The notes below the pieces were generated by a model, which was given only the letters and a program-made list of their open reading frames with translations, made no database searches and was not told the DNA's origin. Shown here piece by piece: positions 24,501 to 62,294 of a DNA stretch of 64,000 nucleotides. A program made the translations under genes and the position numbers. The stretch comes from Octopus bimaculoides. Taxonomy: Eukaryota. Within the stretch, counting starts at the first letter, position 1. Each line of letters starts with the position of its first letter. The stretch spans positions 19,465,062-19,529,061 of the forward strand of contig NC_068984.1 of NCBI RefSeq assembly GCF_001194135.2, given 5' to 3'.

Positions 24501-27500
24501 TGCTTAGCAATAAAGAAGTTCATTTATTTTGATAGTATATTAGGAAAAGCATGAACTTCACAACTTCTTGTTTTCAAAAGCAAAGGGATAAGTTATCAAT
24601 TAACAGATAATCTTTATTACAAAAATCAACTGATCTTCCATTTTATGGTGTGAGTGTGAGTGTATAGGTATGTATGTATGTATGTATGTATGTACGTATA
24701 TATATANNNNNNNNNNNNNNNNNNNNNNNNNNNNNNNNNNNNNNNNNNNNNNNNNNNNNNNNNNNNNNNNNNNNNNNNNNNNNNNNNNNNNNNNNNNNNN
24801 NNNNNNNNNNNNNNNNNNNNNNNNNNNNNNNNNNNNNNNNNNNNNNNNNNNNNNNNNNNNNNNNNNNNATATATATATATATATATGTATGTATGTATTA
24901 CAGTTGCCGGTGTCAATGCACTCATGCTGGTGTTGTGTAAACATACCTGTGCTGGTGGCATGTAAAAAGCACCCACCACACCCTGTAAAATAGTTGGCAT
25001 TTGGAAGGGCATCCAGCCATATAAACTATGCCACAACAGACAATTGGAATCTGGACAGCTCCTGTCAAACCATCCAATCCATGCCAGCATGGAAAATGGA
25101 CATTAAATGATGATGATGATGATGATGATATATATACACACATTTTGTGGGTTAACAAGGCAACCAATAGTTTCATGTAAAGAGATCTTCACAATTGTTC
25201 AAGTGAATCACATAAGAAGTGTTGGAACTTGTCTCCATTTTGGAGAAACTATCGGTTACCTGGTTGACCCTCAAATAAAGAATATTTATCTACCAATGTG
25301 GTGTTGAGTACTCATTTTCACTGTTCAATATTAGTGTGTGTATATATATATATATATATATATATATATGTTACACTAATTGATGATTTAATTGTTTAAT
25401 TAATTAGTTGATTGATATAAACTATATTAGAATGTCGCAATTTTGGGGTGAGTTAAAACCCTATTAACTTTTCTACATTACATTTGTCAAAAGAAAAGGC
25501 AATTCTCAATGGCTAAACCTAATATCAGTTAGTAGCTACCATACAAAGATACATTTCCCCACTCTGAACATCTATTGTAACTATAATTACTATTAGTTTT
25601 GTTAGTTTACAATTATAGGCTTGAATTATCATTGAATCATAGGCCGTGAAGAAGTCAATATTAAACCATTGCAGTGTAAACTCACTAAATTATTACATAG
25701 AAACATAGTTTTCACAAGTCAATAGTTCACAAAACATAATTGTATCATGGAAACACGAAGGAAATATGATGGTACTAACTTGATGGATTTGTACATGCTG
25801 TTCAGTAAGTTCCATAGTCGAAACGTCTAGTGTGTTATGTGACATTAATCTCAGAGATGTCTGGAGAAGCCATTGATCAAATTGTTTTTGGCATGTCTGG
25901 AATGTTGTGTGTTCTTCACAAGACTTATCAAGACTTTTGATAATATGCTGCAAGGATAAGACAAAATAAAACAAAACAAAAAAAAAAAAATTATCAAAAT
26001 GGAATATTGGAAAATGTTTCTAACTTTAAGCGAAGATTCTGTAAAATGAAATTAATGAAACAAAGTTATAAGAAAAGCTAAAATATAAATTTGAAATTTG
26101 GCTGCATTAAAACTAAAAATTCATTTCAGAAGTTAGTTTGCATTCGGCTTTTTTAACAGGTTTCTACAATTTTATAAAATATCAAATATATTTATCAACA
26201 CTCCTATCTAATTTTGGCACAAAGCCAGCAATTTTGAGGGGAGGGGATAGGAAGTGAATTACATGAACTTCGGTGCTCAAATGGTACTTAATTTATCAAT
26301 CCTGAAAGGATGAAAGGCAAAAACCAACCTCACCAATATTTGAATTCAGAATGCAAAAAGATGAAAGAAATGCTTCGAAACATTTTGGCCAACATGCTGA
26401 TAATTCTGCCGTCTCACCTCCTTAATAATAATAAAACCAGATATTCTCTCTCTACCATTTATTTCTGTGCTACAAACGTTAATTCACATTTATCAAAACA
26501 AACAGCACAATTTACAAAGATAAACAGTAAAAAATATGATTAAAAAAGATGTAAAATAAAAAGAAACCAGTAAATATATAAAGAGGCAAGCACCTTCTCT
26601 CAGTCATACTCCACAGAAGGGACACAACAAATCTGTAAGGCAGCCCTCCCAAACACCCATGATGTTAATGTGGGTAATAGTGAGGTAGAGGTACTAGAGT
26701 CAGTTACCTTCATGAGAATCATTTGTTACTTAGATAAGACACAAATGAAGGCAAGGACTTTCTTGCTGCTACTGCTGCTGCCACTGCCTGCTCCATCATT
26801 TTTAAGGTTACTTTATCATGCTGAATTGGGTTGGATGTGATATTCTGAAGTAGTTTTTTTTTTATGGCCAATTATTCTTCCTGACACCAATTCTATCAGT
26901 TGTCTCTTATGACATGTAGATACACTGTCTTATTCTAAAACCCAGGATTTACACAATGTGTATGTGTGTGGGCATACAGACATTCATACAAATATATATA
27001 TATATATATATATATATATATAACTATATACCATAGATATATGTATAATACATGTGTGTGTGTTTGTTTTTATGTCCAGTTATAATAAAAACAATTGTAC
27101 ATTGATATGAAGGGTTACTCCATATTTTTGTTGAGTACAATTCTTTTATACTTTGACACGAATAGTATTGACAGTGGTTTCAAAGTATTGGTTAGCTAAG
27201 CCATCATCAGATTATGATGCATTTAAGTTAATCTTGGCTTTATACATGAGTATATACACACATTTTATAATTCCCCACTTTCATATATATGCATAGGCCT
27301 AAAATAATATATTATAAAATACCTATGTTTGAAATAGAATTGCAGAAATATTTATGAACACATGAGCCACAAACTCTACCTCCATAAAACACAAATTTAA
27401 AACTTCTACATATTAATCAAATTGCTTATAGAACAAGGAAACCCCCAGAGAGAAATATATTGACCAACAGCCTTTGCACCTACCTACATCCGCTTGTGAA

Positions 27501-62294: not shown

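Follow-up and report, generated by a model that had tools for sequence, protein, structure and literature searches.

An ancient two-repeat spectrin module with inherited introns in the nesprin-1 rod of Octopus bimaculoides: evidence from a block of four exon cassettes

Nesprin-1, the product of SYNE1 in vertebrates, and Msp300 of insects are giant KASH-domain spectrin-repeat proteins that belong to the LINC complex (linker of nucleoskeleton and cytoskeleton), in which nesprin-1 is a giant linker protein of the outer nuclear membrane. That repeat proteins grow when blocks of exons are duplicated in tandem is well known: nebulin (super-repeats of 7 modules) and titin (super-repeats of 7 and 11 domains) owe their higher-order periods to tandem duplication of multi-exon blocks with symmetric exons. 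Here we describe a 64-kb stretch of the Octopus bimaculoides genome (contig NC_068984.1, positions 19,465,062 to 19,529,061; hereafter the window), which is AT-rich (34% GC), contains many microsatellites and ten gaps filled with N, and, as judged from sequence comparison, carries part of the cephalopod nesprin-1 (SYNE1/Msp300) orthologue. This part encodes eight consecutive spectrin repeats of the rod, in which two types of repeat, A and B, alternate, and each A–B pair is encoded by a cassette of three exons. Unlike the super-repeats of nebulin and titin, that of the window consists of only two domains, and its copies are anciently diverged (~20–29% identity) and not recently amplified. The gene itself is an ordinary orthologue.

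All spectrin-like open reading frames (ORFs) of the window lie on the minus strand. Exons were called by enumerating AG…GT-bounded candidates around each coding segment. An A unit is a single exon of 327 nt and a B unit is a pair of exons (153 + 165 nt, the M and C halves); each unit is one repeat long and has the same register. The twelve exons (E1 to E12) are:

E1, 61968..62294, minus strand: 327 nt, A unit of cassette 1 (109 aa); AG/GT, phase 0
E2, 60720..60872, minus strand: 153 nt, first half (M) of B unit 1; AG/GT, phase 0
E3, 49738..49902, minus strand: 165 nt, second half (C) of B unit 1; AG/GT, phase 0
E4, 45251..45577, minus strand: 327 nt, A unit of cassette 2; AG/GT, phase 0
E5, 42360..42500, minus strand: 141 nt, shortened M half of B unit 2; AG/GT, phase 0
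E6, 40631..40795, minus strand: 165 nt, C half of B unit 2; AG/GT, phase 0
E7, 37496..37822, minus strand: 327 nt, A unit of cassette 3; AG/GT, phase 0
E8, 34040..34192, minus strand: 153 nt, M half of B unit 3; AG/GT, phase 0
E9, 31703..31867, minus strand: 165 nt, C half of B unit 3; AG/GT, phase 0
E10, 29779..30105, minus strand: 327 nt, A unit of cassette 4; AG/GT, phase 0
E11, 28870..29025, minus strand: 156 nt, M half of B unit 4; AG/GT, phase 0
E12, 25780..25947, minus strand: 168 nt, C half of B unit 4, last unit of the ABAB block; AG/GT, phase 0

Each of the twelve has a polypyrimidine tract with an AG acceptor, a GT donor, a length divisible by three and phase 0-0 ends. Their spliced product is 858 aa long without a stop codon, and the four cassettes contribute 215, 211, 215 and 217 aa. 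The series 327-153-165, 327-141-165, 327-153-165 and 327-156-168, which had been given in a preliminary description of the window, is recovered exactly, on the minus strand and with canonical AG/GT borders in phase 0.

Three other cephalopod sequences (contigs L007 and L008 and the Sepia pharaonis locus L002) support 10 of the 12 exons and the donor of E7. L007 carries the orthologues of E1 (3085-3411, 327 nt, AG/GT, 52% aa identity), E2 (4263-4415, 153 nt, 57% identity) and E3 (4624-4788, 165 nt), the latter two with AG/GT at the projected sites, and L008 carries that of E4 (450-776, 327 nt, AG/GT, 58% identity). The Sepia locus, which contains no N, starts with the 3' part and donor of E7 and continues with the orthologues of E8 to E12 in order (153, 162, 327, 156 and 168 nt). 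These are located at 6113-6265 (53% identity), 9932-10093, 12210-12536 (62% identity; an annotated exon of the SYNE1 model CAE1330625.1), 14836-14991 and 18578-18745. Short ORF fragments from sequencing-run assemblies are 90–94% identical to single window exons (Logan fragments P0077, 94% to E1; P0104, 90% to E9; P0137, 91% to E11). E5 and E6 rest on splice signals, profile matches (E5 is hit by the B-unit hidden Markov model at E = 5e-9) and intron positions common to amphioxus and pufferfish, which include those flanking E6. The intron of E2 is likewise matched in column and phase in both species.

The identity of the protein follows from several searches. The Pfam profile Spectrin (PF00435) matches six stretches over the 858 aa (116.7 bits with a cutoff of 29.9, E = 8.5e-34), and the nesprin-specific profile Spectrin_SYNE1 (PF25034) reaches 90.1 bits (cutoff 35); nesprin-1/SYNE1 and Msp300 contain the same two families. 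An exhaustive HMMER search returned 644 relatives, the best of which (~22% identity) are giant arthropod proteins: a protein of the Drosophila palustris group, a CH-domain protein of Strigamia and a protein of Diamesa. Other named relatives are nesprin-1-like of amphioxus, nesprin-1 of piranha (with a KASH tail) and Alosa, a KASH-domain protein of Macrostomum, Msp300-like of Anopheles and Nesprin-1 of a tick. Collinear alignments of ~800 aa are formed with the amphioxus, fish, Anopheles and tick proteins; the block as a whole aligns collinearly to fish nesprin-1 (aa 95-953 of P0058), the GSRP-56 region of human SYNE1, amphioxus nesprin-1-like and arthropod Msp300-like proteins. Furthermore, ‘SYNE1 [Sepia pharaonis]’ forms a cluster with a fragment that has 60% identity to E10. 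These profiles, the Sepia annotation and the named relatives bear out the earlier assignment of the locus to a spectrin rod of the SYNE1/Msp300 kind. The CH domain (in the model flanking L004 and L006) and the KASH domain (in P0058) are found in the homologues only, as the ends of the octopus gene lie beyond the 64-kb window. Among solved structures only dystrophin matches (E = 1.4e-11), because there are no solved structures of nesprin rods.

The rods of spectraplakins (shot, MACF1, dystonin) and dystrophin have the same spectrin-repeat fold as the window. Membership in these families was considered and rejected: shot- and spectraplakin-like matches do not exceed ~150 bits (700 bits for Msp300-like proteins), and they lack the A/B parity signal described below. 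A word-indexed protein search with E1 and E2 (160 aa) gave no match, and the best named matches of the word-indexed search were to nesprin-3 (SYNE3), to which we return below.

The two types of unit are distinguished by invariant residues. The four 327-nt exons, aligned without gaps, all carry T27, G31, I35, W67, E100, K101 and L105; the four 165/168-nt exons all carry L6, H13, W26 and L34, while position 16 is Y, Y, F and F. Except for L105 and L34, all of these had been listed in the preliminary description. In pairwise local alignments against shuffles the mean z is 12.4 for A–A pairs, 7.8 for B–B pairs and 2.3 for A–B pairs, and corresponding exons of different cassettes are more alike than exons within one cassette. 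Ungapped autocorrelation of the 858 aa gives z values of 7.4 at an offset of 109, 11.5 at 215, 4.2 at ~320, 13.9 at 426, 2.9 at ~532 and 6.0 at 641, the highest value over all shuffles being 4.7. The expected period near 215 aa is therefore present, and the opposite outcome, a single-repeat period with no stronger 215-aa period, was looked for and not found. The proposed module of about 215 aa, or two spectrin repeats, holds in that its copies are far more alike than its halves. Cassettes 1 and 3 are the closest pair (A1–A3 score 147, B1–B3 score 117). The strongest peak, at 426, suggested a duplication of four repeats (two cassettes); this candidate was rejected, as cassettes 2 and 4 do not pair as mutual closest relatives.

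At the DNA level the only matches between cassettes are interspersed intronic repeats, in both orientations. Paralogous exons are 34–50% identical in DNA and 13–29% in protein, and their third codon positions are 0.23–0.42 identical, with a random expectation of 0.27. Residual DNA or intron homology between copies, the mark of a recent duplication, was not found. Since only interspersed repeats match and third positions are near random, the duplication is ancient.

The same alternation is found in other phyla. With A and B profiles trained on the window, adjacent units alternate in 23 of 23 cases in Drosophila, 22 of 23 in Strigamia and 16 of 16 in Diamesa, and in 8 of 9 in amphioxus, 6 of 7 in piranha nesprin-1, 7 of 7 in Gryllus and 5 of 5 in Macrostomum. 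The ABAB pattern also occurs in fragments of human SYNE1, including the isoform GSRP-56. Because these profiles had been trained on the window, a class-blind parity test was run, in which units are delimited with a pooled profile and gapped alignments are compared between pairs of the same and of opposite parity. Same-parity pairs score higher in Drosophila (74 versus 41, p = 1e-51), Strigamia (76 versus 42, p = 1e-45), Diamesa (71 versus 41, p = 2e-31), amphioxus (99 versus 50, p = 3e-5), piranha (65 versus 41, p = 1e-3) and Gryllus (72 versus 48, p = 3e-3); the pairs are non-independent, which makes the p-values optimistic, and the effect sizes are large. The gapped test replaces ungapped autocorrelation here, as in the 3,000-aa arthropod arrays the register is shifted by indels. 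The control rods show no two-repeat signal. In shot, unlike in the window, the single-repeat period dominates (z = 11.0 versus 4.5) and parity has no effect (62 versus 62, p = 0.29), and the rest of the piranha rod gives 36 versus 39 (p = 0.54).

Individual units can be followed across phyla as well. Units of the window score against units of other phyla at least as high as against their own paralogues. The best match of B4 is the terminal B unit of the array in Drosophila (135, next-best 85), Gryllus (122, next-best 47), Strigamia (109, next-best 65) and Macrostomum (120, next-best 65), and B1 matches the unit six places upstream of it. By these comparisons, the four cassettes correspond one-to-one to the terminal eight units of an ABAB block that was present in the protostome ancestor and probably already in the bilaterian ancestor. 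The cassette series stops at E12 because the window holds the terminal eight units of this block. Growth by tandem duplication of a double-repeat module, as had been proposed, is upheld; growth within the rod of this lineage is not, for the protostome ancestor already had the block.

The intron framework of the block is shared to a similar extent. Exon structures of homologues were mapped with an exact-match spliced aligner, which placed 3685 of 3688 aa of amphioxus nesprin-1-like in 64 exons. In this gene, almost all unit boundaries carry phase-0 introns, and further phase-0 introns halfway through B units (mid-B introns) create exon pairs of 163/165, 132/165 and 156/159 nt, and the A4 orthologue is a single exon of 327 nt. 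In Takifugu nesprin-1 all unit boundaries are in phase 0, the B units consist of 156/165 and 144/165 nt, and two A units total exactly 327 nt, split into 183+144 and 173+154. In a joint alignment, amphioxus matches 11 of the 13 window intron positions in column and phase (9 of 11 internal and both flanking), and pufferfish matches all seven positions that its model covers. Even the short M exon of B2 recurs (141 nt in the window, 144 in pufferfish, 132 in amphioxus). Window and nesprin-1/Msp300 thus have in common the A/B alternation, the unit-boundary introns and the mid-B introns. The claim that splice positions outlasted DNA similarity agrees with these counts, exons only 34–50% identical having largely kept their introns in amphioxus and pufferfish.

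The relation of introns to the fold was assessed with a single-sequence AlphaFold (AF2) model of cassettes 3 and 4, which is of low confidence (mean predicted local distance difference test score, pLDDT, of 64.8). The model is all-helical, with loops at A positions 25–28 (the T27…G31 motif) and 91–97 and at the equivalent positions of B, i.e. about every 65 and 40 residues at this low confidence. The canonical helix-A tryptophan of spectrin repeats corresponds in the alignment to W26 in the C exons and, in three of the four A exons, to W80. According to the model, unit-boundary introns are located inside helix B, about 10 residues after the A–B loop, and the mid-B intron is located in the continuous helix C/A', near the structural repeat boundary. 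The Pfam register, which sets the start of a repeat ~10 residues into each 165-nt exon, is consistent with this placement. Owing to these positions within helices, each exon-defined unit is one repeat long and offset from the boundary of the fold.

None of the ten N runs touches an exon: each is intronic or lies outside the exons, and at least 248 nt separate any gap from the closest exon edge. With four gaps, the E2–E3 intron spans 10.8 kb; a hidden exon in it is excluded by L007, a contig of another cephalopod that has no gaps, where just 208 nt lie between the orthologues of E2 and E3. Nothing is concealed by the gap at 24707-24868, since in Gryllus and Drosophila the sequence immediately after the last B unit aligns to the next window exon (at 23491-23300). 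Nor is a cassette missing between B1 and B4, because their orthologues are six units apart in Drosophila, Gryllus and Strigamia. Wherever ORF translations cross a gap (e.g. 38070-38079, 47651-47838, 50165-51111 and 57904-58150), the N run is bordered by microsatellite or homopolymer-codon runs (TA/CA repeats, translated as YIYI…, HTHT… or LLLL…), an observation made directly on some of the gaps, which suggests that they stand for simple repeats left unassembled and that no unique sequence is absent.

Several other histories could produce a regular series of this kind. A recent, lineage-specific tandem duplication of the cassette within cephalopods would account for the regular exon lengths and for the likeness of cassettes 1 and 3. 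It is effectively refuted by comparison of the sequences: protein identity between paralogous exons is at most 29% and their third positions are near random, intron homology is confined to transposon-like repeats, each cassette has its own orthologue in other cephalopods (38–62% identity), and the units match those of other phyla at least as well as one another. We regard it as very improbable. Somewhat less remote, though still improbable, is a duplication of single repeats followed by convergence of alternate repeats on two types under a structural or binding constraint on neighbours. A units have a homogenised look and resist one-to-one assignment across phyla, which could reflect a strong common constraint; however, the two types differ by a common 3-residue indel and in intron content, their type-specific invariant residues include positions with no obvious structural role, B units show one-to-one orthology across phyla, and convergence would not recreate identical intron positions and phases. 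The least credible explanation is an artefact, either mis-scaffolding around gaps or a chance pattern of ORFs. Six gaps do fall within the cassette span, four of them in one intron, but no exon touches a gap, the exons are collinear, in frame and on one strand, and their order and adjacency recur in gap-free cephalopod loci and in homologous proteins from seven phyla or lineages.

A closer contest concerns the exon content of the founding module. The mid-B intron corresponds to A-unit position 54/55. Outside cephalopods some A units also contain an intron (mid-A), placed here by ungapped alignments anchored on the invariant tryptophans:

Mid-A intron of gastropod A1: 55/56 (A coordinates), phase 0
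Mid-A intron of amphioxus A2: 55/56 (A coordinates), phase 0
Mid-A intron of amphioxus A1: codon 55, phase 2
Mid-A intron of pufferfish A2: codon 58, phase 2
Mid-A intron of pufferfish A1: 61/62, phase 0
Mid-A intron of amphioxus A3: codon 69, phase 2

Gastropod, amphioxus and pufferfish, the three lineages outside cephalopods that were compared, all have a split A1 and a split A2. No lineage in which A4 can be examined shows it split (in the gastropod it is apparently unsplit), and A3 is a single exon in either mollusc. The pufferfish model covers three A units, two of which carry the extra intron, whereas the four A units of the window are single exons. The same phase-0 site at 55/56 occurs in two paralogous units of two phyla, one codon from the homologue of the mid-B site, and for this reason a founding module with two exons per repeat (about 165+162 and 153+165 nt), from which the 327-nt A exons would have arisen by intron loss, is slightly favoured. 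The exons downstream of the cassettes in the window, which are half-repeat exons (177, ~165, 171 and 177 nt, apparently all in phase 0), also favour loss. They are:

Next exon of the same gene, 23318..23494, minus strand: 177 nt, half-repeat exon, AG/GT, phase 0; closes the cassette series
Further downstream exons, minus strand, where the gene continues: 23494-23318 (the exon above), ~20785-20621, 19441-19271, 18293-18117 and ~9525-9226; positions are approximate at the ~165-nt exon's acceptor and at the limits of the exon at ~9.4 kb

A profile search with the window units found no further A-type exon anywhere in the 64 kb.

The competing possibility, a founder of three exons with A unsplit and B split, had been put forward in the preliminary description. 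Cephalopods would then keep the ancestral state after the same ancient duplication, and the mid-A introns of gastropod, amphioxus and fish would be later gains or slides. All seven cephalopod A exons at hand (the window's four and the orthologues in L007, L008 and Sepia) are unsplit, as are A4 in amphioxus and apparently in the gastropod, and A3 in the gastropod. Mid-A introns are heterogeneous in position and phase while mid-B introns are uniform, and no A-specific pattern of loss would be required. On the other hand, with a three-exon founder the three lineages must together have gained six introns or more, and two of these gains, in different paralogues (gastropod A1 and amphioxus A2), must have hit an identical site in an identical phase, one codon off the mid-B homologue; the remainder of the gene has two exons per repeat. 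In animal genes, intron loss is much commoner than gain, which also counts against it. We consider the three-exon founder a serious but less probable alternative. Of the original proposal, the double-repeat nature of the founder stands and its three exons are doubtful in view of the shared 55/56 intron; the 327/153/165 regularity of cephalopods may be partly secondary, a product of intron loss.

Taken as a whole, the favoured explanation combines a nesprin-1 rod, an ancient two-repeat module, inherited framework introns and loss of the mid-A intron, and we give it a probability of about 0.55; its core, without the mid-A loss, appears very likely. In this core, the ABABABAB block formed by tandem duplication of the two-repeat module before the protostome/deuterostome split. 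Every copy brought phase-0 introns at its unit boundaries and in mid-B, and these have stayed fixed while the DNA diverged to saturation. The mid-A intron would then have been lost, in cephalopods completely, to leave a three-exon pattern four times over. With symmetric (phase 0-0) exons, whole units could be duplicated or skipped without a break in frame, and this symmetry is the likely reason why the module could be amplified to >30 units in arthropods.

Several observations weigh against this explanation or parts of it. Among the six split units, the mid-A introns fall into five classes by position or phase, so that sliding or independent events are needed. Loss would have affected all four A units of the cephalopod and none of the four B units, for which the odds are ~1 in 70 if losses are random. 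The gastropod gene model is partly garbled and its locus contains 500 N, which leaves the state of A2 there uncertain. Orthology of A units is ambiguous, and A1 and A3 pick no collinear partners in Drosophila. The structure model is of low confidence, as given above, and the junctions of E1–E12 in this species are predicted from ORFs, splice signals and conservation across species.

Nesprin-3 is a short vertebrate paralogue of ~8 repeats with an ABAAB arrangement and only 18–22% identity to the window. In contrast, the window gene has many more repeats downstream, and the giant proteins match it far better (700 versus 91 bits). A nesprin-3-like locus of the frog Mantella (L001) has exons of 345, 137, 178, 183 and 144 nt, which mirror those of Takifugu nesprin-1 (L006; 357, 137, 178, 183 and 144 nt). 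Their likeness suggests that nesprin-3 derives from a stretch overlapping the start of this nesprin-1 block. The cassette itself is not directly reproduced in the Mantella locus, the model of which is of low quality.

In arthropods, the A/B array is expanded to ~26–34 alternating units (P0018 and P0168 of the Drosophila palustris group, P0019 of Strigamia and P0182 of Diamesa). The Drosophila array of >30 units occupies one uninterrupted ORF of >4,400 aa, and hence all introns of the block have been lost there. Another nesprin-like A/B array, with at least 10 A units, is found at 450-14950 of a eukaryotic metagenome-assembly contig (L003; ENA ERZ25069296, ctg21512). Its A units are uninterrupted, M and C are fused in places (a 544-aa ORF at 7244-8878), and it holds the best matches to A2 and A4 of the window.

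The literature searched yielded no account of periodic introns or of a two-repeat period for nesprins, and an earlier description is possible. A passage of Autore et al. 2013 (PMC3646009) cites Simpson & Roberts 2008 for an analysis of relationships between nesprin repeats. The conservation of an A/B super-repeat and its intron framework across Bilateria may be new for this block. Tentatively, the A–B double repeat could be an undescribed, bilaterian-wide super-repeat of one block of the nesprin-1 rod, with eight units in molluscs and chordates and >30 in arthropods, whose phase-0 framework predates the protostome–deuterostome split and in which the mid-B intron is fixed and the mid-A intron labile. 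If true, this would mean that a linker of the LINC complex has a period of ~215 aa in its structure or ligand binding. The period is confined to this block, the rest of the rod having none, which suggests a paired-repeat structural or binding unit; we know of no ligand periodicity for the nesprin A/B super-repeat. The eight-repeat block can be recognised in animals from cephalopods to humans; in the latter it overlaps the part of SYNE1 that corresponds to isoform GSRP-56, and arthropods have amplified it massively. For intron evolution, it would provide eight paralogous units older than the bilaterian ancestor, in which one site is immobile and the homologous site has been repeatedly lost or shifted.

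The conserved template (phase-0 unit boundaries, 327-nt A units and ~153+165-nt B units) can also be used to mend fragmented or garbled nesprin models, and the Sepia and Bulinus models examined both contain errors. The Sepia pharaonis SYNE1 model CAE1330625.1 (CAHIKZ030005582.1, L002) skips the E12 orthologue at 18578-18745 and instead reads ~200 aa of low-complexity intronic sequence (L002 19176-19790). The Bulinus truncatus model KAH9507323.1 (L005, 10001-16214) seems to leave out or scramble exons in the interval from M of B1 to C of B2, where it has tiny exons of 69 and 59 nt and junctions in phases 1 and 2.

The only DNA similarity between cassettes is due to a family of interspersed repeats, ~130–230 bp long and 70–80% identical, which lie in introns in both orientations:

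Interspersed repeat copies: 44050-43877, 35605-35430, 35129-34909, 34618-34441, 26210-26410
Interspersed repeat copies, continued: 29281-29455, 41787-41652, 44778-44682, 61438-61268

Rfam and tRNA scans of the window gave no match. A second dispersed element, probably a transposon or a short interspersed nuclear element (SINE) family, is present in minus-strand frames at 63409-63200, 49282-49136, ~20935-20830, 8326-8168 and 3137-2997, where ORF-like translations of the type ‘…EWLALGR.S.CRN.A.SDWSLV…’ recur.

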